DNA from: Eutreptiella sp. 'Long Island Sound 2002'
Taxonomy: Eukaryota > Protista > Euglenida
DNA length: 64,000 nucleotides
Direction: 5' to 3'
Assembly: GCA_964036045.1 (NCBI GenBank)
Contig: OZ038378.1
Location: forward strand, 200,260,001-200,324,000
Each line of letters begins with the position of its first letter. The first letter of the stretch is position 1. The translations under genes and the position numbers were made by a program. This document shows, piece after piece, positions 7,226-38,570 of this stretch. A model generated the notes under the pieces. It was given only the letters and a program-made list of their open reading frames with translations. It did not search any database and was not told the DNA's origin.

Positions 7226-10200
7226 CACCGAGCTGGTGGAACGGGTCTTGGTTTTTTAACCTGCTTTGGTGTCTAGGGTGGACCTAAAGGGTTTGGCGAG
7301 CAGCAAGCAGCAAGCTACAAGCAGCAAGCAAGCACGTGCGAAATGGGCAAAAATCACAGCTCCGTTGTGGTGCTTCGGATTCCGCCAAAACTTTGGTGGA
7401 TGCTACCAGAAACTCAATGTGGCGGCTGTTCCCGGTGTTCCAAGTGCCGGACCTCCATTTCAAAATCTGCAATTTAAGGCCAAAATCAGTCGTTTTTTTG
7501 CTCAAAACCGCCTTAGAACCCGCTAGAAATGGCCAAGTGAAGGGAAATAGTGGATACTCTACACATGCAGCTAGACTTCCCCATGCCGAGGGGCCCTCTA
7601 GGGCCCTCTAATTCGAACCGCGCCGAAAAGGCCCCCGAAAGCACCAAAATTTGTGCACCTTGGCCGCCGACAGCCCTAAACCAAAACCAAGATTGAATAT
7701 TGGGACCGAGCTGGCGGGGGAAGGAACATCGTCTAGGAGATTTCAAAGGCAAATGAGGTACGCAGTGGAAAGTGGATGAGAGCGGCCCAAAAGGCGCTAA
7801 GAATGAGTTGTATTCATCCGTTTGGGCACCACGACTGGACTGCGATCATTTTTGGGAAATCATGGGTTTGACCCCTTTTTGAACCATTTGTGGTCCCAAA
7901 TTGGCCCATTCTCAAGGCCCTTTTGGCCTTAACAGGGGCCAAAATTGCTCAACGGGGGCTCAAAATGGGCTGATTCCACTTGTTTGTGCACCCCAAATAG
8001 TACAAAAGCATCTTTGGGAAAACACTTTTTTGAACCATTTTTGACGCATTTTTGGTCCCAAAACATTGCATTTGGCTCAAAATGGGCTCATTTCACTTGT
8101 TTAGGCACCCCAAATGGTCTAGGATCATTTTTGGAAAAGCACATTTTTGACCCATTTTTGACCCATTTTTTGTCCCAAAACAGCCCATTTTCAAGGCATT
8201 GTGGGATTTCACGAGAGCCAAAACGAGCCACCATGAGCACAAATTGCGCTAAAAATACTTGTTTTGGCATTGCATGTGGTCCATGATCATTTTTGAAAAC
8301 AGTCTTTTTTTTTTTTGCACCCGGTGGACCTTGTAGACCCATTTGCCACCCACCTCTTTGGGCTACCTCTTGCAGCTTGCCGCAGCCCACTGGGCCTAGG
8401 TACGGGGGTGTAGGTGTCGGTTAGGGCAATTTTGAGGGGTGGAAAACACCAAACGTGGGTGGTTGCGGGTGAATTCGCTGCGCTCGAAATCACGTTTTGA
8501 GGCACGGAGCCCAAAATATGGTATGTTTGTGGTTTGGCACTGTCAGCGGCCAATGTGCACAAATCCTGGGGATTCGGGGGTTGTTTGGGGGCGGTTTGCG
8601 GACATATTGTGGAGTTAGAGGGCCCTAAAGGCCCTTCGGGAGGGGGAAGTCTAGCTGCATGTGTAGAGTAGCAACTATTTCCCTTCACTTGGCCGTTTTA
8701 AGTGGGTTCTGGGGCAGTTTTGAGCAAAAAAAGACTGATTTTGGCCCGAAATTGCAGATTTTCAAATGGAGGTCCGGCAATTGCGACGCCCGTTCCCGGC
8801 CGCCACCCTTGAGTTTCTGGATCATACTTTGTGTGGTTGTCCCTCATACCCATAGGTAGCATCCAGGAAAATTTGGGCCGAATTCGAAGCACCACGATGG
8901 ATTTGTGATTTTTGCCCATTTCGCGTGTGCTTGCTTGCTGCTTGCTGCTTGCTTGCTGCCTGCTGCCAAATCTGTCAGGTCCACCCTAGACACTAAAGAG
9001 GGTTGTAAAACCTAGACCGGTTCCACCAGCTTGGTGAAGAGACCATATCTTGGGCTACGTGGCTCAAAGTGCAATTTCGATCGCACCCACCCGGAGGGTT
9101 ATAAAACTAAGATTGGTACCACCACCTCGGTGACCCTAATCCTAACTAGGATTGAATATTGGGACCGAGCTGGCGGGGGAAGGAACATCGTCTAGGAGAT
9201 TTCAAAGGCAAATGAGGTACGCATTGGAAAGTGGATGAGAGCGGCTCAAAAGGGGCTCAAAATGAGCTACATTCATCTGTTTGTGCACCACAACTGGACT
9301 GCGATCATTTTTGGGAAATCATGGGGTTGACCCCTTTTTGAACCATTTGTGGTCCCAAATTGGCCCATTTTCAAGGCCCTTTTGGCCTTAACAGGGGCCA
9401 AAATTGCTCAACGGGGGCTCAAAATGGGCTCATTCCACTTGTTTGTGCACCCCAAATAATACCAAAGCATATTTGGAAAATAACATTTTTGAACCATTTT
9501 TGACGCATTTTTGGTCCCAAAACAGCCCATTTTCAAGGCATTTTGGGAGTTTGAGTGGCCAATATGGCTTGCAATGGGCTCAAAATGGGCTCACTCCACT
9601 TGTTTGTGGACCCCAAATAATCCCAAAGCTTCTTTGGAAAAACACGTTTTTGATCCATTTTTGACCCATTTTTTGGTCCCAAAACAGCGCATTTTCAAGG
9701 CATTTTGGGACTTTGAGTGGCCAAAATGGCTTGCTGTGGGCTCAAAAAGGGCCCATTCCACTTGTTTGTCGCCCCAAATAGTCGAGGATGATTTTTGGAA
9801 AACCACTTTTTTGACCCATTCTTGACCCATTGTTTGTCCCAAAACAGCCCATTTTCAAGGCACTTTGGGATTTTAGGAGGGCCAAAATGGGCCACCACGA
9901 GCTCAAAACGCGCCAAAAACACTTGCTTTGGCATCCCATGCGGTTCACGATCATTTTTGAAAACAGTCTTTTTTTTTTTGCACCCGGTGGACCTTGTTGA
10001 CCCATTTTGCCACCCACCTCTTTGGGCTACCTCTTGCAGCTTGCCGCAGGTCACTGGGCCTAAGTACAAGGGTCTAGGCGTTGGTTAGGGCAATTTTGAG
10101 GGGTGGAAACCACCAAAAGTGGGTGGCGGCGGGTGGATTGCTTGGACCTAACAGGTTTGGCAAGCAAGCAGCAAGCAGCAAGCCGCAAGCTGCAAGCACT

Positions 10201-11241: not shown

Positions 11242-12099
11242 CCAGCGCTCCCCCTTAGGGCTGCGACCAGGGCTAGGACTAGGGCTGGGGCCGCGGCTGG
11301 GGCTCGGGCTGGAGTCAGGATCTGGCTCCGGGATAACAATGTGGTCCGCATTCGCAGGAAATTCTCCATCACAAGCGGCATCAGGTGCCCGATGCGCCGC
11401 GCTTCGCGCACCGGATGAGTGCAGGGCAGCGCCATGGGGCGATGGGTGCACGGCGCGGCCGGACTGTCGGCGCGCTTCGATGTACTGCGGCAGCGGTACT
11501 GAGTTCGGTGCCCGATCCGCCACCACAACGTTTGGTGGTGCCCCAGAGGCGACGCGCATGCGTGCGACCAGCGACCGCAGCTCCGGCCAGGCCCCGACCT
11601 CCAACGGCAGCATGAGGCACGCGCCGCGCGAGGCCCGGACCATCTTGGCGCAGTGGACGTCCGGGGCCCCGCCGCACAGCAATGCCCCGTCCCACCCCAG
11701 CCCGTGGGCGGTGCGCACAATGTTCCCGATGTTCCCAGGGTACCGCAGCCCGACCAGCGCAACGACGTGGGGCGCGCGTGCGGCCGAGAAGCACAGGCCA
11801 GTGCGCGGGATCTCCGCCTCTGCCAGCAGCCGCAGGCCTTTGCACTGCGCGATCTCTGCCATCACGTCGCGCGTCACGACGGAGGTCTGAGCGGCGGGAG
11901 GAACGCCTTCCTCCCCCTCAACGCAGAGCAAGTGTTTGATACGGATGGCGTCGTGGGCACTGAGCTCTCGTACCAACTGCCGGCCATCGATGACGGTGCT
12001 GCCCGCCTGCCGGCGGTAGGCCGCGTCCTGTTGGAGCCGCAGGAAATGTTTGACGGTGGGATGCCGGAGGGATCCGAGCACTTTCGGGATCACGGACAT
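11242..12099 (-). CDS. SpoU/TrmH-family RNA 2'-O-methyltransferase, 5' exon (~416 aa spliced)
   Basis: MSVIPKVLGSLRHPTVKHFLRLQQ...VIDGRQLVREL (substrate-binding N-domain) and VALVGLRYPGNIGNIVRTAHGLGWD...KMVRASRG (SPOUT motif 1); GC-rich coding composition. Confidence 0.9.
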
Positions 12100-14899: not shown

Positions 14900-16300
14900 G
14901 ACAATGTGCATGGGTCTTAGCCGGCCAAAATTCAACAATTTTTTGCCATTTGTGGAATTGGGGTTGGTCAGTAACATCCATTGCCACGGCTTGAACAAAT
15001 TGCATCTGTTAGTGCCCTTCCTTTCATTTTGTGCAATTTCATATTTGGAGGCACAAAGTTTCCATGATATGTTGGAGAAAAAGTTAAAATATCTTTGCTA
15101 GGCAGGTACAGCAGTGCGGCAAAAATCTTGTGATATACGAAGACTGCCCACAGCTATTTCAGCATGTTCTCTGGCATGTAGTGGAGATATAATTGGCACC
15201 TGCACCAGTTGATCCAGAAAGAAACGTTGCATCTTTTCACCCCTTTTTGAATTTGAATGAAGACCCGGGTCTGCACCGCGCTCAGTGCTCCCTCCACTGT
15301 CGACATTGCCATTCGTGTGCTCTATCCAAATGAACTTGCGCTGCCCTCTAGGCCCAGCTCCTCCGAGACTTCGCCTAGACGTTGATTGTCCAGGTGGGAC
15401 TCTTATCCTACGTTTGCCATCTTGTCTGCCTCATGGTTGCATTTCATGCCCAAACGTGATGGCACCCGCTCCTGCTTACACAAAATTTGCTCCCAGAAGT
15501 CGCGGTGCCACCATTCACGGTTTTCCACCCGCCACTGTTGGTGCCACCATTTCTTGTGATGACAACCATCAATTCCACGATTTCAAAAAGCACCTCGTCG
15601 CACTGTTTGGAAAAGACCTTGCTTGCGCGGTGGGGATTCCCATGTTCTCTGAACAACCTGCAACAACTCCACCCCGTAACTGCTAGCCCTTGGCATTCAT
15701 TCTCCATGGGAACTACCAAGAGAGATAAGCAGGGGTGGGTCATGATTCTCCGTTCTCATTTGGTGGGGCAACAGGAGTGAGCCGCAGTTGGGTGTTCCGC
15801 TTGGAAGCTGATTCGAAATGCATTGTGCCTAATCTGACGCTTTCAATGCTATATGGTGCTTGAAACGCAGGGGACGGCGGGAACGAAGACATTACACAGT
15901 TATAACTGCACGCCGTTGCGGCAATTTTCAAGCACCGTAACAATGGGACATGGGTCCCTTCAGAGAACAAATGCTGAACCGCTCCCTTCACTATTGAGTC
16001 TTTGAGAGCTGTCTACATCTTTCTGAAGAAGCACCATTCTGCTCGTCCCATCTCGTATCGTTTGTGCTATTTGTTTGCAGGGAAGGGGATATCCTTGACA
16101 TACCAACGAAGCAACCAGAAGTACTGTCGCCTCCCACCATTTGCGGTGGTTATCCCAGGAATTGCCGGATCCTTTCTCATCCCCACTACGATGCTCTTTG
16201 CGGTACATTGCCAACGGCGTCTATGGATTACGGGCTGCGTGCCATGTACAGTGCTGGGGAGCACTGTCAACAGGTTAGAGCTCAAACCTACTCGTCGGAT
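14900..16300 (-). mobile_element. Degenerate non-LTR retrotransposon 3' remnant with RNase H
   Basis: Minus frame (with stops) reads VENREWWHRDFWEQIL...RVPSRLGMKCNHEADKMANVG...EELGL. This parallels WVKVPSH..NEEADKLAEEG...QELGL of the LINE at 59 kb. The outer limits are approximate. Confidence 0.55.
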
Positions 16301-18644
16301 TGGGTCGGTTGATGGTTGGTTGGCGACTGGGCTCGTTAAGGGTGGGTGTATCCCAAGGCATGGTGGCATGACTCGGAGGCCCTCTAGATCCCCGCACCTG
16401 GATGCACTGGTTGTGCCTCCACAGGTGTCTTACTCCCACACTGCTAGCGAGCAGGAAAAGGGGGGGGAAGGACACCAGAGAAGGAGGGACGGAGGTGGGA
16501 AGAAGGAAGGAGAGAGGACAAAGGGGGGCCAAAGGTCAGGAGAGCGGAGTGCAATGACGGAAAAAGAAATAGAGGCACTGAAGGAGCGACCGTGATCTGG
16601 ACTGAATGTCCCCAAGAGGTACGCTTCTCTGTAAAGATGTACTTCCTTTACGCTCAACCTCACATGGGTTTGTGAAGTGGCACCCCTGGTCCCCCGCACA
16701 AAGGCCACGGTGAAGGGCCCTGCTGGCAATGGGTCGTGACAATGGCCTGAGCTACACCCCCAAACCATACAAAAAGTAATCGGGCCCGGGTCATATTGTC
16801 ACAGTGGACAGTGCAAATGTCCTGGTGGCCCACTCACCAACACATGTGACGTGGTGACAGAATGCTTGTGAGACCAGATCAGACGCAACCAAAAAAGCTA
16901 TGGCGAGGGCTGTCCTGACATCAGCGGACCCACCAACCAACCCCAAACTGCCTCAGGGACCCCTCCGGCCGCCAGTCATCCCCAATACCCGTCGCTGACC
17001 CATCGGTGATCCCCAGCTGCCGTTGGTCACGTCACACACCAACTGCCATTGATTCCCCTCGCCGTCAGGCTGTCCAGATCAAACAAAAATCAAATTGGAC
17101 CCTGGAGACGAGCAACGACCCTAACAGTGGTGACCACTCGCCCAACAAGATGGACGAATTCAACAAAAAAGAAGTCGCTAAAACCCAAGGTGGTCCGCAC
17201 TGGCAGGCTGCGGCAAAGAATTGCTGCTGGGATTCCCGACAGATTCAACCGGGCTTTTTCGGACAGAGCTAAGGGACAGAGAACGCAGGGAGCAAGGTGT
17301 GGGGTCCAGGAGGCTTAAAAGCTATGAAAGAAGTCTATGAAACTGATGAAGCAGGCAGAAGTTTGAACACCGGTGGACACATTTCCTGGTTCACTGACCC
17401 TCCCAATCAATCCTGCGCCCCCCCCCCCCCCAACATTACTGTGACGACTCCTCAGCGAAAAATTGAGCGGGACTATGGCTGAAAAGGGTCGTTAAAATGA
17501 ATCCTCTTTCCTTTTCTTGGGGCAGCCTCCTAATTAAAAACAAATGAAACAAAACATCGGGTCCCATGACATTTGGTGCATCAAATTGATACAACTCCCT
17601 TTGACAACGGGTCACAGGGCCATATGAGCTTGAAGAAAGGCAAACATTCATGTTTCCCTCGTATGCATGTAAATGGCCTCAATGTGTTAATGATCAAAAA
17701 GGCATAGGACAACTCTCACTCGTGTTGCTAGTTTTACCCATCGTGTCAGAGGTGCCGATGACGAGAAATACAACAAAGATAGAGAGACAAATAGTAGGAA
17801 CTTCCCTTTGACCGCCAGCCTCAAACAGCGGCCAACTTACTGTTGGATGGCCAGTCAGCCTTTTGTCGCTTTCAGCATGTGCAAATAGATCCGGGGCCAG
17901 GTGTAGGGCTCGGGCTGTATAGCTGACAGCTTGGCTAGAAACTTGGGGCACTCTGCCACACAGACAACTGAATTTGTGAATCCCCTATGCAATTGCCGTT
18001 TCCCTTGCAAAGATACATTAACCATGACCTGTGCACCAACCCTCTCGCCCATTTGTCATACTGCCCGCATGGCATTTGCTGCGACGACTCCAACAGTGAA
18101 GCATAAATCTGACAGCACACTATCCTCTCGCTCATGTCAGTCATGATGATGACGGATTGCCATTGATCGAGTCAAAACAAAACGTGGGGAATTGATACTG
18201 CTGGAGGACAGACTATGCGTAAAAAAAATGAGGGTCAGGCTGGCCTGGTAGGAAGCAGGCAGAACTGCTCAAATGCAACCCCCCCCCATCCCCCCCCCCC
18301 CTCCACACATCCTTGCACCAGTATGCTGGAACGGGGCAAAGGGCTGGGCCTACATCCCGCAGAAGTTGTTATAATTCTTGATGATGAGCTGCATGAAGGT
18401 TAGTCGGGAGCAAATATATGCAATATAAGACAGAGGAGACAAGACAAAAATACGCTCAACCCTGACGCACCCCTGCGCTGACACGTCCTCCCTTTCGCAC
18501 TCGCGTCCAGGACCTCAAAAAGCAGATGCCTGCGCTGACATGTGGTACTGTACCGAGAGTCTGGAGTCCGCCTGTGCTCCGAGCAGGTATATGCACACCC
18601 GTAGAATACACACACGAAAGCACCCAGAAATGCACAAATCCGTC

Positions 18645-18683
18645 TGCACACACAGACACACACACACACACACACACACACAC
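18645..18683 (+). repeat. (CA)n microsatellite
   Basis: Visible cacacaca tract. Confidence 0.9.
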
Positions 18684-25479: not shown

Positions 25480-26260
25480 TAAGAGCACCCCCCCACACAC
25501 ACCCAAATAGGGTGAAAAACACATGAAGAGGGGCCAAAACATGCTTTAGTTAGGATGTTTGATCATTTTGCATGGTCAAAGTATGAAAAAAATCAGTTTC
25601 AGAAATTTCCATTTTTGAGCTACCGAGGCTGGAAAATAGCATAAGCAGGTTGTGTGCCCTAGACCCCTTGGTACCCCCCCCCCCACCCCAATAGGGTGAA
25701 AAACACACAAAGAGGTCTAAAACATGCTTTAAATAGCATATTTCGTCATTGTAAGTGGTCACAATATCAAAAAAATTTGCAAAATTTTCCATATTTGACC
25801 TATAGAGGGTGGAAAACTGCTTAAGCAGTTTGTGCACACCCCAAATGCCATTGAACCACCTACAAACAGCAATTTTGAAGCTTTTGGGGGGCCCATGGCT
25901 CGGGCTACATGGGCCCAGTGGCCACTGCGTGGGCCCCCATGGGTGCTCAAGCACCCGTATTGTCACCAAATGACCACCCAAACCCATCCTAGGGGCAACA
26001 AAAGGGTTTCGGAAAAAGTGGAAATGTGAAAAACCTTCAAGTGTCACTAAACAGCCTACGCAACAGCAATTTTGGGGCTTTCGGAGGGCCCATCCCCAAA
26101 CAAAGGGGGACAAAATCAAAAGTGGGTGCCTCACCCCTGCCTTCTCGCAGGCCCCAAAGAGCGCTGGAAAAGCTACGTCAGCCCTCCGTCCTCGCGGGTC
26201 CCCAAACAAAGGGGGCAAAATCAGAATGGGCTGCTTCACCCCCGCCCACGGGGGCCGCCG
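25480..26260. repeat. Dispersed composite repeat, including isolated units of the 105-bp satellite
   Basis: cccaaatagggtgaaaaacac...aaacatgcttta is duplicated (~25502 and ~25687). 26090-26260 matches the family D unit. Confidence 0.6.
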
Positions 26261-26749
26261 CCAGCCAATGTGTGACCCCGAGGGGTGTTCGACGGTTTGG
26301 GGGGCTGTAGGGGGGGGGGACCCCATCCCCCTCTGAAGCCCCCCCCCCCCCCTTCGTTGACCCAAACCCAGCACTGTTTCCGTCAGGCCCCGTCCAAGTG
26401 CGGAAACACACAAAGCTAACAAGACGCACTGTGACTGTTCATAGCTCATGATTGTTTTGCTGCGCTGCAGCACTTTCAGAGCAATACTGAATGTTGCCTT
26501 GAGTTCGCCCAAAGGCCTTCCCTTCCCCTTGTCACAAACCACAGACATATATATAGAGAAGTGAAGGGAGGCCAAATATTTTAATAAATTGTTTACTTTC
26601 TAAACCATTGGTTTTCTCTAATTAATGGCTGACAGCAGGTTATTTTCCCAACTTTCTTTTTTTTTTTGCACTATGCCTCCCAACCATCCGGGTGGGGGCT
26701 CCCGATCATAACTACCTAGGTGGCACATGGTTCTCTCGCTAGCGCTTCC

Positions 26750-27720
26750 GTTTCCGCTGAGTCCATGCTCTCTTTACCCCTTGTCGCCCAACCCGGGCTC
26801 CAGAACACTCTGTCTGCAAGTGACTTCACGGTAGTGGTATCCCGTGTGTACATGCTACTATTGCTTCTTCTTTGGAAAGAATCACCCCCTACTGCACGCT
26901 CGTTGTATATCTTGCACACAAAGACCTCTCCGGCCTCGCAACATTACAAGTTCTCCTTGAAACCATTTTGATTCTACCTGTACGTTTTCCTGTAGGCCTA
27001 CTCAAAAAACCTGGAATAGTTGCTTTTGGCCCACCAGTACCCATGTATCAATGCGCCCCCTGGTTTGCCAAGTGTTAAACACACGGTATGTAACGTCTGC
27101 CCATTCCTAACCTTCTATAGGTGCTACGGCCTTAGCGGCTTGTTGGCTCCCCCGGGTCATTCTGCAAACTATCAGTTATGCTTTGAATCATGAAGGAGAG
27201 CTTTGAGATTTTGTTCTACTACTAATTGCCTGTACAAGGTCTAAAACCATTGTAGGTATGCACAAGCGGTGTTGTGGATCATGGTGCCGTCAAATGCAAG
27301 GGTTTGTGGGTGGCATCTGCAGTACAACGCTTAGGTGTCATCTTGTTCGTTAAAACTGAATGGTTATGAAAAGCAAATGAAGCCAAGGTTGAAGCAATGG
27401 ACAATTGCCCCTTAGGTTGCGGTCAAAGGAGTTTCAGCATGCTGAAAATACGGCAGCCCCGGACTTTCTTAAGGCAAAAAAAAAATGCTCCAACGTTACG
27501 AGGGGCGCCGAAGGGGAACAATTACACTTTTCCAATTGATGCAAATGCGCCTGCTACCGAGATATTCACTTCCATTGTTTGTGTCCTTGGGAACCAGAAA
27601 ACATGACTTCATACGCGCCACAGTCTGAGATTGTTGGTGTTTCTCAAAAAGATGTGAATTAGCAATAGCTGGTTCGCAAATTTTGAGCACTTTGAGCACA
27701 ATGTGGGGACGTAGGCCATA
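26750..27720 (-). pseudogene. KDZ (Kyakuja-Dileera-Zisupton)-like transposase remnant
   Basis: Across frames, in the expected order: DCGAYEVMFSG, then HFFFALRKSGAAVFSAC, then ALYCRCHPQTLAFDGT (first catalytic Asp context, ~27283-27330), then AIVACTHGIPL (C-x-H-G, ~26830-26860). Many stops and frameshifts. Confidence 0.6.
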
Positions 27721-28429
27721 CCATTACTTGTCAGGGCTGAAAACAGGCAAGAAACGATGCAAACTGACGTTCCAAAGTTGTAGTTCAGGGACCACTGGGT
27801 GATTGCACTAGACCTCGTGCTTCCTGACACGCTGCAAGTGCCAAATATGTGTCCCTGCTCTGCATTACGAAAGGGAGCAATACTACCAATGTATGTGAGT
27901 ACAAGATGAAAATTGTTCAGAAATATCTCTCGATTGGGCATTCAATTGCAACCGATCACATTTGCTTCCTTTTTGTTGACCAATCGAATTCTCTTTGCCC
28001 CGAACCACAGTTGTTTTCCAATTGCTCCCCATGGCTTTGTCCTCCGGGTGCCTTCCACGTACCTAAGCTCACCTCCTCTTTGCCCTCTCTATAGTGGTAA
28101 TCAAAGCCAAACAAAAATGCAATTCAAACTCCCAGCTTGCTATCTCCATTGTCATCATAGAGGTCGAAATCCACGTTTGTGTGTGCTCTCGGGCACTGTG
28201 TAAATTACAGCAATGGGGTGGCAAAATTGGAAAGAAAAGCAGTAGACGGCAACCACGCTATCTGTGGTTAGAAGCGGAATGTGACGACCACCTCATTTCA
28301 GGTTCCATCTCTCAGCAAAACGTTGCAAATTCAGCAACATGGTGAGGAGTATTTCCGCAGAACATTAAACAATCAATCTCAGCGCTCAAGCAACCACCCT
28401 TGGCTTACATCAAAGACCATCGCTATGAT

Positions 28430-29235
28430 TCAATATAAAAGAAGACGGGCCAGCTTAGGAGGAACAAATCCTCCAAGACTATCAATGGCATCGTAGAGGC
28501 CATTGATAGCTGCTCTTTGGTCCGCCTCCTGCTGAAGCCTCCTCCGCTTTACCCGGCGATCACTCTCCCTGTGGCTGCGACGAATTGCGTCGCAAGCTTG
28601 CTGCGCCGTGTACTCGTTCCCTTTGCGACGCCTTCCTCTCTTTGCAGAAACAGTTTCCGGCTGTGCCGGTTGTTCCTCCTCTTGCTCCCCCTCGTATCCG
28701 TCATCCTCATCCTCTTCGTCAATGGCAGCGGCATCATGTTTGTAAGCAGCCCAGTCCTCATCCTCATCCTCAGTCTCTTCCTCGTGGGCATCTGCCTCAT
28801 CTTCCTCGTCGTTGTCCTCTTCATCTTCCGAATCTGAATCGTTCTCCAACACCGCCGCAAGCCCTGCGGCTCTACTCCACTCATCTCCCATCGGCACGTG
28901 GTCTCGACCACCCTCTGCCAGCTCCTCATCCTCTTCCTCATTGTCCCGCCTCTCGTCCTCCTCTTCTTCTTCCTTGTGCTCCTCTTCCTGCTCCTGATCC
29001 TCCTCCTCCCCACCTTTGTCCTTCTCCTCTTCTTCCTGCTCTTCATCGTCCTCCTCATGGACGTCATCGTACCAAAATTGGAATGGGTCTTTTGAATCAG
29101 AAAGTGTGCCATTGTCCGCGTCTGCTTCTGCTGTGTGTAGCATTTTGTCCTCCGCCTCCCCTTCTCTCTTCTTTTTTTCCTCCCCCGTAACTTCCCCCTC
29201 CTTGGGCTCCACCTTCTTCTCGAGACCCTCGCTAC
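28430..29235 (-). CDS. TRF-like Myb protein, exon 2: long Glu/Asp tract plus basic NLS-like C-terminus
   Basis: Acceptor ttgcgtgttccag|GT (phase 1); open to a TGA; acidic tract followed by KRGRRRK and KRRR. Confidence 0.7.
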
Positions 29236-29474
29236 CTGGAACACGCAAGAATGTGTCAAATCAAGTGTGGACCTCCTAATGAAGACATAGATGTGAGCCA
29301 CAGAGATTAAGACACCCCGGGACATACAACGTTTGCACAACATTCACTGAGCATGGGCTGTAGGCTTTTAGTATGGCCAGGCTCCCTAAGAATGGGGCAG
29401 AAAGCTTCGTCATCAACGAACGTGAAATGATGCGAAACAAAAACCAAACAACCTCAACAGTAATGAGCTCGTAC

Positions 29475-29637
29475 CCGCCTCCTTTTTCAGGATTCTCCAG
29501 CGGTCTTTTGCGGCAACATTTGAGCGCTGGGCCAAGCGCGAGTCCTTGACGGTGGCTTGCCAACTGCCCTCCCCATACAGCAAAACCCCTCGGCGAAGAG
29601 CGGCATCCTCCAAAGGTGACCAACTAAGGCGCGACAT
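29475..29637 (-). CDS. TRF1/telobox-like single Myb DNA-binding domain, exon 1 (~322 aa spliced protein)
   Basis: MSRLSWSPLEDAALRRGVLLYGEGSWQATVKDSRLAQRSNVAAKDRWRILKK; donor GCG G|gtacga is phase-compatible with exon 2. Confidence 0.8.
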
Positions 29638-30429
29638 TTTGCAAGACTGAGATCTGAGATAAACTACATGAGGGATCCTACATCAGGCAATACGAATAGA
29701 TCAGCGGAGCGCCACATGTCACGGGTAGCAAGTTCAAGAGAAGTTTTGGTTGTGCATATACAAGGCCATGCACGCACGTAGCTATACGTTGCCACCGCAA
29801 GACTCTGGATATCTAGGCGAGCGTGACGGCTAGCAACTGCAATGAAAAAAGCAAGTCGCCTGTCCAGCGCCGCGAGCGGAAGAGAAGGTGTGGAGGTTGA
29901 CATCTCGGGCGGTGCACACACAAGGTGGTGAACAGACAGAGCGGTGCATACACTAGGCAAAATATGGCCTGGGCAGAAGGCTACTTATTTGAAGAGTATG
30001 GGGGCGGGCCCCACCTGGCAGTGAAGGGAGCCATCTCTCGAGCACACGCGATTCAAAGAAAAACGTTTGGCGGTTCACACACCAAACGGCACATGCAAAG
30101 GGCACGAGAGACACAAGGCGGTGGACAAACAAGGTGGTCCGTCCCTACCGAAAGAGTCTTGTTATTTAGGGGGGATTCGAGGGTTGGCCCTTGCATTGAG
30201 CGAAGCGAGCCATCTGTTGTGCGAAGCTAGTCAAAGGGTACGCAAAAAGTATGGCGAGGTGGGTACGGAAAGGTACGGGCGGCAGGGGGTATGGGGGTGT
30301 ACAGCAGAGCTAGAGAAAGGGGGTATAGCAGGATATGGGGGCAATGGTAGAGGGCGGCACAGCTTGGTATGGAGGGGGTAGGGGGGGGGGGCAGCAGGAG
30401 GATACAAAGGGCTACGGGGGGCTGGAGGG

Positions 30430-33400
30430 GGATCACATGTGGGTGCAAAGGGGGCACAGGGGAGGGGCTTTGGGGAGGCTGCTACGCGGGGGCAAGGTCA
30501 TGCCAACTATCACAAATGGGCTAAAAAGTACAGGTTTAAAGAAAAGCATCAGCCGATCGGCATCAAGGGAGGATTCAATCCTCAACATTGCTGAAAGGTG
30601 CTCAACAGGCACAAGGCCATTTCTATTGAAGTTTGAGGGCAGACGCAAAACAAATCGGTCCGATTCAAGTGGCATGTGTGAACATATGGTGTGAGACACC
30701 ACAATGAACTTTGTCTCTAGAAGTGCATGTTCTAACCCACCTACGGACGTACGTTTCAAAGCAGCGGTGACTACCGTTTGTCACATGTTTGACCCATATG
30801 TCGTCGTAGGCTACTGTTGTTCGTCGGACTTGGGTCATTTTGGGCGCTATGCAACGCCCCTTCGGCATTCCTGGTGCTAAAAGCGCATACTGAATAAAAA
30901 TCCCAAAAACTAAAGGTTCCAGGCCATGACAAGAATGTGAGCACCGTCTACGAGGTGTCGTATACCAGAGAATGGAACACTGCCTCCAAGAAAAACAGCA
31001 AGGCTTTGATTGTCATTTTATAATCTTCCGTCTTTCGTGTACCCTCTGTTGTTGCTACTGCATTTACACCTGATGAGCCGTGAAGTGAACAATGCTTTTT
31101 GCAGGCCTGTTCAACACCCTTATAAACACTCTCAAGCATTCAATGGACATGCAAAATTCCCTACCTAGCAAATGTGTATTCCCCAGTTGGTACAGAGTCA
31201 CGTAATGTTGCCTTTTTCCAGCAATTGGGGGCCTCAAAGGGGATTTTCACCAATGACGCTTTCCCGGTCACGCGACGCATGTACACCTGCATTGATGACA
31301 ACACAAACTTCAACTCTGTGCTTCATTAATTATCATTAGGTGTTCTACACCGTCTACGTCGCATGAGACAAATTGAGGTGCGATCCTTTTGGCATGTATA
31401 CGGATTTTCATGAACAAAAGGCGATAGTAAAGTTGTTGTAATCTACAACGACCGCTTGTTTAAAAAAATCACGTTGTTGTGTCACCACAGCACCAAGCCA
31501 TTGAGCCTTTGCTGGCAACGCACACTGACTAATAACTCCGCATTTGCTTCATCTTATGGCCCTTCATAGCTTCTGATACGCTAGCAGGGATAGTGGAAGC
31601 ACCACGTTTTGATTTGTCTCTGCTTTAGCCAGTCATAGTGGTCCTTGAAAGAACCTATTGAACTTGTATAGGAGCAAGGAAAGTCTTTTAAAACATTTCT
31701 GGTTTTCTTTTGCCGGATGAGTGGAACCGCAAACGCTGCAAATAGACGAGCACATGCCTTTCCAAATTTATCCCCCCCAATGCTTGCCTGTGCAGGACCA
31801 TCAGGTCCTTCTGGTTGCACGTCTGCAGGGTACCCACGGAAGCAAACTGACGGCTCACAGGTCACCTTTTTGGCACTGTGAGCCCCAAGGTTGCCTCTTT
31901 GGTGCTGAGGAGGTCACATCCACATGCCAAAGCCTGAAACTGCTTTAGAGATGATCCTCACAGTGCCGACTAGCAATGAAAAATGCAGTCCTGAACAGCC
32001 CAAAAGATAACCCCTGCGGTAGAAAAACTTGTGCCATAAAAGGTTGCGTGTCCATCACCATCAACTGCCCCTGCGCGCACTGGCCAAAGACCCTCAGTGG
32101 AACACACTGAAGGGCTTGGAGGTAGGTACCCACGCCTTCAAGCTGCTATAGGGGTTGTCTTGGGAGTGACAAGTGCGAATGAAAATAGCTGTCGTGAACA
32201 GAGAATGAAAAAAACTCATTGAGCAGCCCAAATTTTAATGGAAAAGGTTGCGGTGCAACACCATCAACTTTTCCTACTTGCAGCTCTAGAACACACCTAG
32301 ATTATCACCGTGAAAGACTGCAGGTCCATTGCAATGGTTTTCAGTTGGTCTAACAGAGGTCGTTAGCGTATAAACAACACCTGCTGCTGCTCGCAGTCCT
32401 GCAAAATACTTAGGCCTCTGTTTGCCAAATGCAAAGACAACGGGTCTTCGCGGTCTTTTTCTTTGGAAAACATTTCCCGACCACGGTGCCAGTCTTTTAG
32501 TTTGGCAGACAATGCCTTTCGTTGTGAAACTTGGTACCAAGGAACGAGCACCTATTATGACAATCCCTGCCACGCAAGACGGAATTGCATGGGACGGCGG
32601 CGCAGTGTATTTCAATGTTTGTCCTATAGAAGACGACCGAGCAGGGAAGCAGGCACCCACAACAAGGCAAGGACCATCTAATCATTGCAGTGATCGGAGC
32701 AGACAGCAAGATGGGATCGTCCGACACAGTAATTCTGACGTTATAATGGCTGGGGACACGGGTATCAAGGTTAGTGACACTTTGAGGGCCGAACAAGGGG
32801 TTAGGCCATATAGCTCAAGGCAAACAAAGGCACAAAACCCATATAGAACATGCAAGAATGACCTTGATCTTCAATGTGCCATCAGTCATGGTCAGCATTG
32901 TGAAAACCAAGCTGTCAATGCTAGCAATAGGGCGGAAAGCCGAGGTCACATGAAGTTATCAAAAAAAGAGTCCAACTCACACATTACACAATACGGAGGG
33001 GCTACTCAAAGTTGCCAACTCATGGACTACCATGTGAGGTCAAGGTTTTGGGACTTGCGGTACAGAGTTTGATGATGTCCTTCTTTCAGAAACAATGCAC
33101 TCTGCTCTTTCTCCACCATTGGTACAAGGCAGGCGGACATAGCAGGTGTTGAGGCTAGTCTGAAAACGACATGTTTTTGCAAAACAAGCTGCCGAGCGCT
33201 ATGTGGCACCCCGCCTAAGATCAATGTATGTTTGTTGCTGTTGGGCTGCTGTGAACTCGCCTGTCTGTTCCCTTCTGGCTCGGAGGGATTCAAGTTCGGG
33301 GGCTCGTCCACGAAGAGAGTTTCGCAAACTTCTATCTGTTGTGTGTCTGCCGGTGGTTGGGTTGAAGGCACTAGATCACCGCGTCTTTGAAGCCAGCTGC
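30430..33400 (-). pseudogene. Decayed multi-exon coding sequence of unknown family
   Basis: Protein-like minus-strand segments (30433-30759, 30665-30868, 30948-31300, 31581-32300, 33027-33371) broken by stops, with GT/AG-like splice motifs between them; no family recognised with confidence. Confidence 0.4.
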
Positions 33401-34164
33401 CATGGGTCAGTCTGCTCGCTCTCTTTTTTGTGTGTCCTATGTGTATGCTGGCCTCCTATGATGGATGTTGCACTTCGCATGCCGTTGGACTCCTTTCATT
33501 TTTTTGCTTTCGGTCGAGTCAGGTTGAGGCCTGGAATATCGATAAACGAATTTTTGCATTGTGCATCCCCCCGATTCCCGGGGTGCTGCAAGCGATGAAC
33601 TAATTGAGCCAAGAATTCAGAGTGTTTGTTAGGCACCTATGATTCATAGCACATTCCTCGAGAAGTTGCGGCTATACCGGTAAAGAGAGTACACCATTTG
33701 AGTTCAAGATGTCATCCCATGGAACTTGTCTACAGACTTGAAACAACCAATGTAGACTCAGTAGTAAGAGCACAAGCGCTACATGCACCCAGCACCATGC
33801 AGAGTACCCTGCATTAGCTTCACATTACTCGAAAGCAGATGTCATGGTTCAAATTGAACCATCGCAATCGTACTACTCGTGGAAAAAGTGAATTGAGCCT
33901 ATTATTTCCAAGGAGGGCTGCGTTGGGCACCTCACACAGGTGCTCTCAATAACATTCAAGCCACCAAAGGGACTTTGTTTAGCATGCATCTGATGAACCA
34001 CAATCGTTTGATGCATCATCAGGATCGAGCATTTCAGTATCCAGATCCTCCTCCTCTTCGGAGCCATCTTCCGAACACAGGTCCTCGGAGGATATGGGCT
34101 CCGTATTCTCAAGGGCATCGTCAAACATGGCCTCATCGCGTTTGCCAGTGAAATGCGAGGAGCT

Positions 34165-34715
34165 TTTGTCTCCGTACCAATCCACTAACTCCTCTCGAAT
34201 TAAAATCTCCCTTTTACTCACAAGCAACATAACACCCTGCGGAGCAGATTGCCGTTCAGGTGTGCTACCTTGTTCCCTTGACCTCAAATTCCTTGTTTGC
34301 TCTCCTGTGTTTGTGCTAGACGATGCGTTGCCATAGCCTTTGAATAGGCAAGGACGATTCTCAAACACAGTATATTTTTTTTCGCGCGGATGTCTGTGAG
34401 CGGTAGCCACCTGGTGGTGCAGTTGGGACTGCTTTCTTGGGAGTTTACAAATGAACCGATGACATTGTGCAAGGATCCTTCGTCCCAAGTTGCCATAGCA
34501 GTTTCCACTTTGCTGATGCTTCTTAAGCCATCGATCACAAAGTTACACCCAAACCAAGGACTAATGAAATAAGACGTGTCAGCTCGGCTGCCCTTCGGTA
34601 TCATTGCCCCCAAAAAAGAGCAACAGTGGTGTTTTTAGGGATGGAGGAGCCGTGGTTAAAGACCCCGCGGCCAGCATCCTTGCCATTGATGCAAGAATGC
34701 TTTATTGCCAAGTGC
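34165..34715 (-). pseudogene. SET-domain (lysine methyltransferase-like) sequence with two frameshifts
   Basis: LAIKHSCINGKDAGRGVF...IPKNTTVALFWG, then SYFI...FVIDG...GSFVNSQESSPNC, then MLLVSKREILIREELVDWYGD. These are the SET N-motif, the NHxCxPN-like motif and the ELxF/YDY-like motif, in order. Confidence 0.75.
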
Positions 34716-34869
34716 GGATGCCGACTGCCCTGCGGTGTGCGCCACAGGAGACCATCCGGCAAATTTGCTTTTCGATCTTCTATAGCCCGAGTGCAAACAG
34801 CCATCTCTTTAAACCACTCAGCCAAATGGGCTGAGCAGTTGCAGAGCTGTACCAACCTGAAACCTTTCA

Positions 34870-37810
34870 TGACAAATTCTTGGAACCTCTGATTGTCAGT
34901 AATGGAGGCATCTTGCTGAAAACCGACAAGTCAAGAAAAAAAGCAGCAGCAGCATCGCTCATATCAACAACAGTCTTATGTTGTGGCGAAAGTCTTTGTA
35001 CTGTCAGCGAAACCAGCGAAAGGAGTGGTTTGAATAGGCGAACATCCGTCCAATCAACACGAAACACCATGAGAGAGATAAATGCTATGTTGTCCAAGTG
35101 CCAGGGTTGTACAACAATTGCACAAAGCAACTTGCTGCCAAGAAACGCTGCGAGGATTGCGGGCTGCTTATCAAGAATGCGTGACCTCACACCATTGTCC
35201 CCTTTGAAGCTTAATAGGCTATGTGAAACCTCCCACTGGTGAGACCACCTTAGACACATCGTGCACAGCGCGACTAATGTCCTACCCAAGGTAACGCGCA
35301 ACCTAGGAGCGAAAACCAAAAAAAAGTGTCACTTTGTTCAAGGTGGCGCACTGCCATGAACACAATCACACGGCACCACGTACATGCACATGTGGGTCAC
35401 TCAGCTCCCAGGTGTTATCTCCGGTCCCAACAGGTCTCGCTCTTTGACCGCATCATTAGCCATTTCCATTGGAAAGCACACAATCTTGATGGGGAATCTG
35501 TAAAAGACACGGTTCCACAAGGATGAAAGCCCAAGTATTTGTCGCACTACAACGAATCTTGAACACAGACACGTTGTTTTTTGGTAATTATACCGCGGTG
35601 TACAAAACTGCCATCACACACCTGCTAGTGCAGAGTTCCTCCTCCACAACAATCTTATTTGCATTTCGAATGAAGTCAACATTTGGACCATGATGTTCTT
35701 CGGTGAGTTCAATGGTCAATGTACCACTATAGCAAAAAGTGTCATTGAAACCTTTCAGGATGCTACAACCGTGATCGTCCAATTGTCCGGATTGGGATGC
35801 ACACATACCACAGCAATTCCTGCGTGTACAAAGTGCTCTGGATACAGGTTGGATGTTCTGTAGTGGATTGCAAAATGTGTAGGAGAACGGCGGAATCTTT
35901 CAGCAACAAGTCTCGGACAGCACTTGCTAGTTGTACTATTTTGGTAAGCCCTAGAAATTGTTGCACTCCAAGCATGGAAGGTAATTGACCGGCGGATCTT
36001 TCGATATGCCGGGCATACAAGGGACGCATCGCATTTACAAAGAATAACACAGATTGCCACACAGTGAGTAAGCGCCACGTCGTGCAGTGGAGCCAAACCA
36101 AAGGGATCATCGCTGGTGCAAGGACCAATTGTAAGACCAAAACAAATCGATTGGATACAACCACGTTGCTTTGTATCATCCCCGGACCAAGTGATGTGGG
36201 ATAACATGCAATGCAGATGGAAGGAAACACCTAGTTGGACATGTTCCTATCTCCTTCAAGAAGACATGGTAGGTACTTAGTTTGTCCATGGTAGGAAACT
36301 TTCTGCGGTGCATCTCATCAAGGACTGTTGCAGCAAGCTCAAGGGTACACCTGCCACGGAGAGCAATGTTACAGGTTTCATGATTTGTAAACACCCTTTT
36401 AGCTACACATGCCACATACCTATTGTTCCATAGTGGTGTTGGCCACAATTCATCTCCCTTTAGTCGGCTCAACCGATCATCCATTACAGCTCTAAAGGAT
36501 GACTTGCACAAAAAGAGTGTGCAAGAGACTTCTCCATCCCAAGGAGTCATCTCCTTCAACACATCCCATGGGTCTGCAGCAGCCTTTAGAAGCTTTGCTA
36601 CCGACTCCATTTCGTGAGTGAAAGGGTATATGAACGGGTGCCCCTTGGCAGTAAGTACATAGTGCCGAGCGATGACCAGCTGCAACGGGAAATGAGACCT
36701 CAGTAAGATGCACAAAATTAAGCCCCTAATACAAAGAAAAGACCCGCAACTCCTTCCTTTGACTTGCAAATCCAACAGGTCTCGACGCCCCCGCATCTTC
36801 CTTTCGCTTCTTGGCTTTTTTGGATTTTCGGCCAGGTTGACCCCCGTCTTTCACTTGTCTTGCTTTTCGGCAGCCTCGAGGAGGGTTTTGTCGCGTCTTC
36901 TCTGGTAAAGGAGGGGAATCTTAACTTTCCTTTGGATCACTTTCATTTGGTCGGGTCCGTTTCTTTGGCGTTATCAGAACTTGCCGCGTTTGAGCTAAGA
37001 GGAAATAGATACACAGGAAGGTGTTCGGCATGAAAAGACAGCATACATAAACGAAAAGACAGCATACATAAACATCTGACGGTTCAAAACCTGATAGAGG
37101 AGGCTTGCTTGAGCGGAGGGGGTTCGGACTTTGACTTCTTTGACTTTGACTTTGCGGCTGTGACCCCTTTTCCACGATGAGCCGAAGAGAAGGTGAGACT
37201 CACTTACCATTTGATACTCTTTTACAACACTGCAACAAACATGTAAATGCAATGCAACAAACATTTAAAGGCTGTCAAACACACTTTCTACCTGCATGGC
37301 ATCATCAATCACCCCTTGCAATTTGGGAATGACACCCTTTTCACCACGCATGGAGGGGAGGGGCCTCATGCATCGGAATCATCCTCCCACTCGTTGCGTG
37401 CCCTCTTGCTAGTACTCTTGGTGGCGAGCACGCTTCTTTGGCCGGGTTGCTTGCGATCTTTTGACCCAGCAGGCTGCCGGCCCATTAGACATGGATTCCG
37501 ATGGCACATAGTCACTAGTGCCTGACGGGGCAGTACTGCTGGAGGATGCACTCGTACTGGAGGAGGCATTGGTGGTGGAGCTGCTGCTACTACTACTGCC
37601 ACTACTACTACTACCCTCGTTTGGCCAAGAGAGAAGAGCAGGGGGAACAGTGGGTAGGGCCGGCGGCGCAGCAGGCTTTGCCTTCGGCGGCAATGGGGCC
37701 CGGAAATTTTCAAAGGCTTGCAACACCTTTGTCTTCTCCTCTTCGCTGCACCGGGCATAGTCATGGGACACACCGGGCTGCGCTTGTGCCATGTGGTGTC
37801 GCATGGCGTA
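34870..37810 (-). pseudogene. Decayed multi-exon coding sequence upstream of the SET remnant, truncated by the 85-bp satellite
   Basis: Protein-like ORF pieces at 37409-37804 (Ser-rich), 36176-36670, 35763-36000, 35588-35806 and 34867-35200; canonical splice-like sites such as ATG|gtaagt (~37206), ttcctcttag (~36996) and cccgttgcag (~36680). Confidence 0.45.
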
Positions 37811-37814
37811 GGTG

Positions 37815-38570
37815 CAATGTTAGTGGGCAAGGTAGCTACATAGGCCCTGCCGCCTTGGGGGTCCCCTCCGCTTCAGAGCGGGGGACAAAATCAGAAGTGG
37901 CCAACAAGTGGGCAATGTGGCTACATAACCCCTGCCGCCTAGGGGGTCCCCTCCGCTTCAGAGCGGGGGACAAAATCAGAAGTGGCCAACAAGTGGGCAA
38001 GGTGGCTACATAACCCCTGCCGCCTTGGGGGTCCCCACCGCTTCAGAGCGGGGGACAAAATCAGAAGTGGCCCACAAGTGGGCAAGGTGGCTACATAACC
38101 CCTGCCGCCTAGGGGGTCCCCTCCGCTTCAGAGCGGGGGACAAAATCAGAAGTGGCCCACAAGTGGGCAAGGTGGCTACATAACCCCTGCCGCCTTGGGG
38201 GTCCCCACCGCTTCAGAGCGGGGGACAAAATCAGAAGTGGCCCACAAGTGGGCAAGGTGGTTACATAACCCCCGCCGCCTAGCGGGTCCTCACCGCTTCA
38301 GAGGAGGGGACAAAATCAGAAGTGGTCCACAAGTGGGCAAGGTGGCTACATAACCCCTGCCGCCTGGGGGATCCCCACCGCTTCACACCGGGGGACAAAA
38401 TCAGAGGTGGCCCACAAGTGGGTAAGGTGGCTACATAACCCCCGCCGCCTGGGGGGTCCTCACCGCTTCAGAGCAGGGGACAAAATCAGAAGTGGCCCAC
38501 AAGTGGGCAAGGTGGCTACATAACCCTTGCCGCCTCGGGGGTCCCCACCGCTTCAAAGCGGGGGACCTTA
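37815..38570 (+). repeat. 85-bp tandem satellite, ~9 copies (family C)
   Basis: Unit agtggcccacaagtgggcaaggtggctacataacccctgccgccttgggggtccccaccgcttcagagcgggggacaaaatcaga; highly homogeneous. Confidence 0.95.

Follow-up and report, generated by a model that had tools for sequence, protein, structure and literature searches.

What kind of DNA makes up the block of lower GC content that lies near the middle of the window (the whole 64,000-nucleotide stretch of Eutreptiella DNA analysed here), and how did it come to be there? The original prediction was of a decayed giant KDZ-type transposon forming an ~11-kb block nearly free of the repeats found elsewhere in the window. The outline of that block is confirmed: positions 26712-37352 have a GC content of 0.484 vs. 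0.538 for the remaining window, self-BLAST of the window revealed no repeats common to 26257-37821 and the rest, and the block sits between satellites. One flank is an 85-bp satellite (37822-38566, no strand assigned; 8.8 copies according to TRF), which also forms a 5-kb array abutting another member of the same family, L006, at a truncation point other than that of the window copy. The other flank is a 105-bp satellite fragment identified by repeat analysis (26093-26256, likewise unstranded), whose monomers do not continue the phase of the 105-bp array at 39.5-43.1 kb; there is therefore no insertion signature at the window copy.

What the block contains is a ~20-21-kb segment in worn and rearranged form, of which this euglenid genome has about a dozen copies beside telomere-type repeats. 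BLASTN aligns it along the minus strand at 80-90% identity to five paralogous loci (L001, L005, L006, L007, and L013), with homology limits at 37352 and 26710/26712. At least nine other contigs of this assembly carry these modules in identical order, and the claim of a decayed, large, multi-copy element carrying SET and telomere-type Myb-acidic genes together is upheld by these paralogues. The cluster of SET-like ORFs has 10 distinct members, spread over nine contigs of that single assembly. Five copies (L001, L005, L007, L010, and L011) are arranged as A-K-M-K'-M'-K'', while L006 proceeds through A-K and the beginning of M to its contig end. The young copies are mutually 97-98.5% identical over 3.7-16.4 kb, and each contains a J-K-M module of 3.1-3.7 kb repeated in tandem two to three times. 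The window copy has diverged from them by 10-18%, and its modules have been rearranged into the minus-strand order A-X-M-K. On short contigs, word depth reaches 295 + 297 for the Myb exon and 377 for the acidic exon, compared with 41 for the single-copy region X, and conserved pieces stand at ~7-14 times single-copy word depth in independent runs. All copies come from a single contig-level assembly, several of them at contig ends. The window copy, L013, and L012 lie within contigs, the last being an 850-bp solo fragment flanked by ordinary genes; such placements would also fit a mobile element.

What does the segment encode? In the young copies, a two-exon gene combining an N-terminal TRF1/TRF2-type Myb domain with an acidic tail sits within the tandem module. 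Its counterpart in the window lies in module M (28451-30388, minus strand), which comprises the gene and its upstream region and is 82-83% identical to two M copies each in L001, L005, L007, and L013. Exon 1 (29475-29637, minus strand) supplies the ATG and the TRF-type Myb domain in an open frame; exon 2 (28430-29235, minus strand; open frame 28433-29260) encodes an acidic tract, a basic C-terminal region, and the stop codon, and corresponds to the 277-300-aa ORFs of young copies. Between them lies a 239-nt GT-AG intron (29236-29474, minus strand), whose donor, acceptor, and in-frame join are conserved in four copies. The retention of this intron in all four aligned copies points to copying at the DNA level. 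The resulting model of 322 codons is still open in the window copy, with dN/dS of 0.32 for exon 1 and 0.30-0.57 for exon 2. The Pfam Myb profile scores 19.5 bits in the window copy (cutoff 24.4) and 25.8 bits, above the cutoff, in a young copy. A PDB search with the domain returned TRF1, TRF2, or Terfa as all of the 16 best matches (TRF1/TRF2 best, E = 1.4e-8), and the KDRWR recognition helix is preserved. No spliced-leader tag was found.

The second gene is an intronless ORF of 446-475 aa with a SET fold, intact in young copies. Its window counterpart (33979-35621, minus strand) can be aligned along the full 475-codon L005 ORF, its pieces covering codons 32-475 of the intact paralogue, and is interrupted by 1-bp deletions near 34920, 34617 (T7 to T6), and 34382 (A9 to A8); a further 222 bp (35220-35441, minus strand) have been inserted at codon 62. 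The insertion is absent from all young copies, and no second copy of it was detected elsewhere in the window or among the loci that were fetched. The original prediction had placed GT-AG splice motifs between the coding remnants. One such junction stands, at 29474-29236 inside the Myb-acidic gene; the SET-like pieces are not exons, being separated by these deletions and the insertion relative to an uninterrupted ORF in the paralogues, and the window copy of this gene is probably a pseudogene. The window's own pieces give no Pfam SET match and a sub-threshold Myb score; the domain calls rest on the intact paralogues. For the intact SET-like paralogue, remote homologues carry Pfam SET, the Atlas feature score for the SET fold is 0.97, the top 50 Foldseek matches are SET enzymes (50/50), SETD8 and SET7/9 align at a VIA Z of ~10, and vSET aligns over 103/105 residues (Z 9.4). 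Catalysis is doubtful, because a Ser replaces the NH-motif His of SET enzymes. Taken together, dN/dS values of 0.17-0.77 among young SET-like ORFs, those of the Myb-acidic exons, and the fold and domain matches indicate that the family carries two real genes.

The upstream part of module A (35437-37352, minus strand; 88% identical to L001 9133-11050 and L005 8272-10184) holds broken counterparts of 184-aa and 264-aa ORFs of young copies, with dN/dS of 0.29-1.06 against a young copy, and gives no Pfam match. Region X (30389-33975, minus strand), compared with the young unit by BLASTN and TBLASTX, is mostly copy-specific and single-copy, its contig depth being flat at about 41 in one DNA-like run and 31 in another; it includes a family-related piece at 31424-31823 and a stretch at 33669-33975 common only to the solo fragment L012, and likewise lacks a Pfam match. 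Within it lies motif J (49-61 bp; 33369-33429, minus strand), which BLASTN aligns to 11427-11487, 15527-15575, and 18620-18668 in the merged coordinates of ctg10644; in young copies, the motif comes immediately after the SET ORF's stop codon and after that of each of the two acidic ORFs.

In the same merged coordinates, proximal starts differ among copies (≤3930, 5624, 9399, 9717, 10010 three times, and 10335). What they adjoin is either the 85-bp satellite or a single (TTAGGG)n-plus-418-bp satellite, entered at different phases. Distally, the two copies that could be followed both run through a 252-bp satellite to the same (TTAGGG)10-19 junction, where homology stops; the common distal end is thus that of two copies, one of which also has (TTAGGG)9 at 24957. 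In L003, the K module is shortened and capped by (TTAGGG)24. All of these tracts are only 9-24 units long and, in this contig-level assembly, lie within contigs, which counts against a location at true chromosome ends.

How well does a decayed KDZ (Kyakuja/Dileera/Zisupton) transposon, with a transposase remnant at 26.7-27.9 kb, account for these data? KDZ elements are large repeated units with chromatin-related accessory genes such as TET/JBP (PMC12730594), and the present family resembles them in both respects, its cargo genes co-occurring in many copies. The supposed transposase stretch, however, is module K (26712-28446, minus strand), a non-coding spacer of the tandem J-K-M unit that recurs two to three times per young copy together with the Myb gene. 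Stops run throughout all three minus frames at 26.7-27.9 kb, no sense-strand ORF of K exceeds 93 aa in young copies, and a long ORF is missing from every one of at least eight copies, although these are 98% conserved in other respects. K pieces of at least 30 aa, from the window copy and from the 98%-conserved young copy alike, matched no KDZ, CxC, or DDE profile even at E ≤ 5, an outcome that the original prediction itself had named as refuting. Neither TIRs nor a TSD or other insertion signature was found. The KDZ reading, which also sits poorly with variable rather than constant termini, is rejected, as is that of any other recognizable DNA transposon, and we regard KDZ as extremely improbable. 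Of the minus-strand order originally proposed, the SET-like and Myb-acidic remnants do lie in sequence, and the KDZ remnant drops out; nor, given the missing profile matches, TIRs, and TSDs together with variable proximal ends and distal ends at TTAGGG tracts, is there support for a transposon that targets or remodels chromatin. The ~21-kb unit could instead be a mobile element of another kind, unknown or non-autonomous, that moves in trans or by an unrecognized enzyme and prefers TTAGGG tracts or satellites; the Myb protein would then be its DNA-binding accessory, as in PIF/Harbinger. The dozen or so copies dispersed on different contigs, the solo fragment between host genes, 5' starts that vary while the far end is shared, reminiscent of 5'-truncated elements, the intronless SET ORF, and two SET subfamilies that are only 31% identical yet linked to the same K-M array would all suit such an element. 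So would codon usage: GC3 is 0.48-0.55 in the family's genes vs. 0.87 in the nearby glyoxalase gene, as expected for selfish or foreign DNA, and this counts against the duplicon reading given below. Nevertheless, neither the window block nor the ~21-kb young unit has an ORF in which a transposase, reverse transcriptase, endonuclease, or integrase domain was detected. The absence of TIRs and of a TSD or insertion signature applies here as well, the proximal junctions are always to satellites in varying phases, and the retained intron speaks against an RNA intermediate. On the standard model, a retroelement primed on the G-overhang of a chromosome end would show TTAGGG in the orientation opposite to that observed, where the repeat follows the sense strand. 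We therefore consider a mobile element unlikely.

Less probable still is that a giant-virus DNA fragment was endogenized and later duplicated, bringing with it a SET-like gene of viral (vSET-like) origin. The vSET alignment and the intronless, low-GC3 ORF are compatible with this origin, and giant endogenous viral elements have been reported in Euglena gracilis (PMC12455990). The best Atlas feature match is a SET cluster recorded from Nucleocytoviricota, although the Atlas taxa are explicitly no evidence of transfer, and three of the remote homologues with Pfam SET (P0018, P0019, and P0020) are known from short contigs only. No ORF of the unit contains a viral hallmark domain, and the gene accompanying the SET-like one is interrupted by a conventional intron and encodes a TRF-type Myb domain of cellular kind. 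One might also suppose that there is no repeat family at all, merely ordinary host genes whose copies are haplotigs or assembly duplicates of one locus, as a single contig-level assembly with several copies at contig ends could suggest. Word depth and junctions already contradict this supposition, which we find scarcely credible: flanks and truncation points differ between copies, conserved pieces exceed single-copy depth severalfold, and the window copy is both diverged and rearranged.

Duplication of subtelomere-type segments accounts for the data better than a DNA transposon does, and we think it reasonably likely that the block at 26712-37352 is an interstitial relic, old and rearranged, from a ~21-kb duplicon family of subtelomere type, similar to yeast Y'. 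Its copies would have spread by DNA-level duplication as at chromosome ends, through break-induced replication or through ectopic recombination that extends to the telomere, with breaks healed by telomerase; transposition would not be needed. Duplication of this type would explain the variable starts against satellites, the TTAGGG ends, and the retained intron.

Several known systems offer points of comparison. The telomere-associated retroelements, among them Penelope-like Athena elements (Terminons) and HeT-A/TART, are large, carry additional ORFs, include truncated copies, and end in telomere repeats; the present family shares all of these but has no reverse transcriptase, keeps its intron, and carries TTAGGG in an orientation unfit for G-overhang priming. 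Human subtelomeric duplicons are patchwork blocks with degenerate (TTAGGG)n at their boundaries and variable proximal limits, and the D4Z4/DUX4 macrosatellite places a DNA-binding-protein gene in each unit of a kb-scale tandem repeat. The family combines the duplicated blocks, TTAGGG boundaries, and variable proximal limits of the former with the gene-bearing tandem unit of the latter, in another lineage, with other genes, and with only two to three tandem units per copy. In Saccharomyces cerevisiae, Y' elements are kb-scale and ORF-bearing, number about a dozen closely similar copies, form short tandem arrays with telomere-type repeats at or between their ends, and spread by recombination rather than a transposase (see also PMC13177704). 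Our family is like Y', and like fungal telomere-linked helicase blocks, in its ORFs, dozen copies, tandem arrangement, and telomere-type repeats. It differs in cargo (SET-fold and TRF-type Myb genes instead of a helicase), in its larger size of ~21 kb with an internal tandem module, and in being known from contigs in which TTAGGG is internal and old relics lie inside.

The Myb-acidic protein, for its part, is close to TRF1/TRF2 in its best-matching Myb structures and conserved recognition helix, and departs from them in having the Myb domain N-terminal, followed by an acidic tract, in its multi-copy nature and atypical codon usage, and in lacking a TRFH dimerization domain detectable by Pfam or PDB searches. 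The Myb protein may bind TTAGGG tracts, and the SET-like protein may act on, or bind, the chromatin at such tracts.

The block at 26712-37352 (minus strand) stands apart from the rest of the window in composition: in the composition profile, GC content is 0.45-0.53 from 27 to 37 kb but 0.52-0.68 to either side, and direct computation gives 0.484 for the block and 0.538 for the remaining window. It is also poor in repeats: when 26.0-38.5 kb is compared by self-BLAST with the entire window, no part of 26257-37821 recurs, and matches are restricted to the two flanks, a 105-bp satellite fragment at 26093-26256 and an 85-bp satellite at 37822-38566. Pfam searches of all stop-to-stop pieces of at least 48 aa on both strands of the block returned no SET, KDZ, DDE, reverse transcriptase (RT) or integrase domain, the sole match being a sub-threshold Myb domain (29416-29682, minus strand), so that the window alone cannot settle the presence of SET or KDZ; an Rfam search of the window gave nothing at gathering thresholds. 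In a collection of 5.8 billion proteins, the block's longest ORF (36179-36850, minus strand) has a single relative, which lies on another contig of the same assembly (locus L001; ENA ERZ25074135). This locus carries the block's modules in the same orientation, with an uninterrupted 446-aa ORF in place of the window's SET-like pieces, and the 90%-identity cluster of that ORF comprises 10 distinct sequences on 9 contigs. GC profile, self-BLAST and paralogues thus bear out the original prediction of a compositionally distinct, repeat-poor block with SET and Myb genes on the minus strand, and the paralogues on nine contigs support its reading as a degraded member of a family of large repeated units that carry SET and telomere-type Myb cargo. 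What did not survive are the KDZ identity and the proposed SET exons, and neither a transposase nor terminal inverted repeats (TIRs) that would speak for transposition were found.

The family was examined at eight places of the SET-like ORF cluster and in two extensions. The young copies (L001, L005/L008, L006, L007/L009, L010 and L011), near-identical units of a duplicon of ~21 kb, share 97-98.5% mutual identity over 3.7-16.4 kb. They begin with module A (a 184-aa ORF, a 264-aa ORF and then the SET-like ORF), followed by J, a motif of 49-61 bp directly after the SET-like stop codon, K, a stretch of 1.7 kb, and M, the Myb and acidic ORFs; the full order is A - J - K - M - J - K' - M' - J - K'', then ~5.3 kb more sequence. 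L006 holds A, K and the start of M only, and its contig ends there. The upstream 264-aa ORF may not be a real gene, since its dN/dS against the window copy is ~1. In independent sequencing runs, word depth reaches 295+297 on conserved parts of the Myb exon and 377 on the acidic exon, corresponding to approximately 9-14 copies of those words; the runs containing the window stretch behave as DNA (flat depth of ~41 and 31), and no RNA run contains it. J also occurs at 33369-33429 in the window and, in the merged coordinates of the ctg10644 unit, at 11427-11487, 15527-15575 and 18620-18668; in the young copies it comes after the stop codon of the SET ORF and of each acidic ORF, and it could be a common 3′-end signal or a recombination joint.

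The telomere-type Myb-acidic gene of the original prediction is confirmed. Its Myb domain scores 25.8 bits against Pfam in a young copy (cutoff 24.4) and 19.5 bits in the window copy, and its 16 best PDB matches comprise only TRF1, TRF2 and zebrafish Terfa, with E-values from 1.4e-8 to 1.1e-5 and with the KDRWR recognition helix aligned to these TRF-type structures. On the minus strand of the window, the gene model runs from an ATG at 29637 through exon 1 (29637-29475), a GT-AG intron (29474-29236) and exon 2 (from 29235 down to a stop codon at 28430-28432); the exons, which were searched separately, join in frame into a predicted 322 codons. The intron donor and acceptor are kept in four copies from three contigs, and the gene remains open in the window copy. 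Measured against the young copies, the Myb exon has a dN/dS of 0.32 and the acidic exon one of 0.30-0.57. With TRF1 and TRF2 the protein shares its single Myb/SANT domain, which is closest to theirs, and the recognition helix. However, TRF1 and TRF2 possess a TRFH domain and a C-terminal Myb, whereas Pfam detected no TRFH dimerisation or other domain here and the Myb domain, beginning at residue 4 of the predicted protein, is N-terminal. Given this placement and the lack of any other detected domain, the protein is not a TRF1/TRF2 orthologue.

The SET-like gene is divergent. Its pieces in the window give no PF00856 match, and the intact paralogues reach 18.1 bits (E=0.0036) against a cutoff of 22.4 bits. 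An exhaustive HMMER search of 1.84 billion representatives found six relatives only, namely two fragments from the Eutreptiella genome and four proteins at 27-36% identity, all four of which match Pfam SET at 20.3-25.0 bits, half of them above the curated cutoff; a profile search with the SET alignment added no further relatives. The alignment keeps the GxGVF, YxxDGxR, HNxxGSFVN and EELxxxYG blocks. The structural model (AF2) of P0005, the SET-like protein of the family, is confident over the core only, with pLDDT of 60-82 over residues 220-357 and 390-411. All of its top 50 Foldseek matches are SET methyltransferases, with VIA Z scores of 10.1 to SETD8 and 9.4 to vSET (103 of 105 vSET residues aligned), and the Atlas language-model feature score of 0.97 agrees; the fold is therefore that of SET. 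Its enzyme activity is doubtful as judged from the alignment: the NH motif (NHSxxPN) has lost its histidine to serine, the family reading GSFVNSQ where the remote homologues have GSFVNH, and an extra loop of ~30 aa precedes the last strand, although the tyrosine of EELxxxYG (ELxxxY) is retained. Among the SET-like ORFs of the young copies, dN/dS of 0.17-0.77, mostly 0.3-0.5, indicates moderate purifying selection. A second, intact SET subfamily (P0017, 416 aa, 31% identical, NH motif kept) is found at L013:6001-7251 on ctg8383, with the family's K-M tandem array immediately downstream (92% identical to that of ctg10644), its cluster comprising 3 members on two contigs; this shared arrangement, with a protein so divergent, indicates that the linkage of SET and Myb is older than the young burst.

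Compared with the intact ORF, the window's SET-like gene is disrupted by an insertion of 222 bp (codon 62; 35220-35441) and by 1-bp deletions at codons 162, 263 and 342. The pieces that had been taken for exons separated by GT-AG motifs are therefore frameshift fragments of an ORF that is uninterrupted in the paralogues. As two of these deletions fall in homopolymers (T7 and A9), sequencing error is possible for that pair; the 222-bp insertion has no second copy among the window and the fetched loci that would mark it as a repeat. The window copy is 88-90% identical to the young copies in A and 82-83% in K and M, and its modules follow the order A - X - M - K, unlike that of the young copies. 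X (30389-33975, minus strand) is mostly private to this copy and shows flat, single-copy word depth of ~41 and 31 in independent sequencing runs. The window copy is an ordinary decayed relic. A back-joint from 32392 to 30381 in read contigs was dismissed, as it rests on ~20-bp matches inside foreign contigs. A contig from a run whose label gives a second organism (X4, depth ~5) connects 28565-28705 (minus) with 30478-31453 (plus), an inversion-type joint (28565/30478) that is absent from the window and could reflect either a difference between strains or chimerism in a contig of low depth. Two estuary metagenome runs contain ~6% of the sampled window words, and three short contigs of one of them (X7, depth 2-3) are identical to the window at 29680-29889, 32888-33038 and 33227-33377, which places the Eutreptiella source or a very close relative in that habitat.

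KDZ elements are defined by their transposase, and Zisupton also by TIRs and 8-bp target-site duplications (TSDs; PMC12730594). The transposase had been placed within K (26712-28446, minus strand), a stretch that in the window has many stops in all three minus frames and in the young copies has no sense ORF longer than 93 aa, even though these copies keep 98% conservation over the remainder of the unit and have intact SET and Myb genes. K is tandemly repeated together with M inside each copy, and its 35 pieces of at least 30 aa, from the window and one young copy, matched no KDZ, CxC, Transposase_21 or DDE profile in Pfam at E<=5. The sole match, to Exo_endo_phos at 26719-26943 (E=0.038), is regarded as noise, since the homologous piece of the young copy does not reproduce it. 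K is a non-coding spacer of the tandem module. Elsewhere in the ~21-kb unit, ORFs of at least 70 aa contain no transposase, RT or integrase domain, and the precomputed Pfam hits of called genes include no mobility domains save those of an unrelated retrotransposon in L003 and L004. The latter is a chromovirus-like LTR element with a 659-aa ORF of rve integrase plus chromodomain (L003:13841-15820, minus, the same as L004:12260-14239, plus) that sits between inverted copies of the SET-like gene. A TIR and LTR search across the window block gave no terminal inverted repeats and no long direct repeats, and no inverted repeat joins the block ends. The proximal ends of the copies are kilobases apart, and termini at which a TSD might be sought are not defined. 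The flanking 105-bp satellite pieces are out of phase (23 vs 92), with no simple insertion signature, and insertion of the block into a 105-bp satellite array was rejected, as the monomer phases do not join. Among the checks suggested alongside the original prediction, the Pfam search of K for a KDZ or DDE profile and the search for TIRs at the block ends came back empty. With no transposase, no TIRs and variable ends, the block is not a KDZ transposon.

In the merged coordinates of the ctg10644 unit, the proximal limits of homology lie at <=3930, 5624, 9399, 9717, 10010 (three times) and 10335, each adjoining satellite; for L006 this is the 85-bp satellite, which in the window lies 470 bp from the limit. 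In L001, L007, L003 and L011 the limit adjoins one element, joined at different phases, that consists of a (TTAGGG)n tract, ~450 bp and then a 418-bp tandem repeat (L007:2837-3783; L001:5137-6493; L011:7473-9999; L003:6486-7273 and 9127-9999) and is absent from the window. The distal limit is seen in two copies only, plus a healed break in L003. At the same distal nucleotide, (TTAGGG)9 in one copy corresponds to a 480-bp replacement in the other, and both run via a 252-bp palindromic satellite into an identical (TTAGGG)10-19 junction, where homology stops. In L003 a copy breaks off inside K and ends in a (TTAGGG)24 cap, the capped unit recurring every 7.8 kb. In ctg10644 the distal TTAGGG tract stands head-to-head with (CCCTAA)24. 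The 252/333-bp satellite is built of 22-bp palindromic units (AAATTGTCCGACGGACAATAAA; L008:15197-19607 and, on the reverse strand, L009:15650-17215). At L008:19613-19979 (ctg10644, ~53.7 kb), (GGGTTA)19 is followed by seven copies of a 16-bp repeat (CCATGACCGCGGTCGC) and then by (TAACCC)24, head-to-head tracts that represent either an ancestral end-to-end fusion or a chimeric assembly join. Six of the nine loci lie 0-55 kb from a contig end, and the TTAGGG tracts are short and contig-internal.

Among known systems the family comes closest to gene-bearing subtelomeric duplicons, such as the yeast Y′ element and the human subtelomeric blocks that have interstitial TTAGGG at their boundaries; the cargo differs from that of Y′, and SET plus TRF-type Myb is new for this kind of duplicon. 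Features of the duplicon type are present in the highly similar copies, the variable proximal limits and the telomere repeats at the distal limit (two copies and L003). We propose that the copies may have spread by DNA-level duplication of chromosome-end-type segments, with which the variable inner limits, the outer limits at G-strand telomere tracts and the healed breaks agree; break-induced replication or ectopic exchange could have generated the pattern. An RNA intermediate is argued against by the retained intron and by the lack of a spliced-leader tag, for which a 24-nt pattern was absent from the window even with 3 mismatches allowed and had no identical counterpart in the loci. A telomere-associated retroelement is not supported, no RT domain having been found and the intron being kept in all copies. 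Transposition as the spreading mode is not supported by the available data.

A mobile or foreign origin draws on location and composition. Three members lie inside contigs: the window copy, L013 and a solo fragment of 850 bp (L012:10107-10954), the last at ~1.53 Mb of ctg10855 between a PhyH-domain gene and a cytidine/dCMP-deaminase gene; this fragment is a piece of the 3′ half of the SET-like gene and extends 300 bp beyond the young-copy boundary in common with the window copy only. GC3 is 0.48 in the SET-like ORF and 0.55 in the acidic ORF, against 0.87 in a host glyoxalase gene 10 kb from the block (L002:1-860, ~45.9-46.8 kb of the window, minus strand), so that the duplicon genes depart widely from the codon usage of the host. 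Yet no hallmark gene supports a selfish element of unknown kind, which we consider rather unlikely, and the same holds for a viral origin, which is more improbable still even though giant-virus insertions have been reported in E. gracilis (PMC12455990). Equally unlikely, to our minds, is that the family is a self-propagating, telomere-repeat-associated selfish element, encoding its own TTAGGG-binding TRF-like and SET-like proteins and propagated by host telomere repair. If so, these proteins would seat the element at telomeric or interstitial TTAGGG tracts, or the element would be copied along with the tracts, and the family would be a euglenid counterpart of Y′.

We found nothing specific in the literature on Euglena telomere or subtelomere structure and on euglenid telomere-binding proteins, and, in the literature searched, no description of such a duplicon family in euglenids. 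The earlier call of a giant KDZ transposon in Euglenozoa is removed as false, and its place is taken by a mappable family, a duplicon of about a dozen copies that carries TRF-type Myb and SET-fold genes beside satellites and interstitial telomere repeats. Should the Myb protein bind TTAGGG, it would provide a lead to the chromatin proteins of euglenid telomeres and interstitial telomere sequences, and the family would represent a case of telomere-binder genes residing in duplications that are themselves bounded by telomere repeats.
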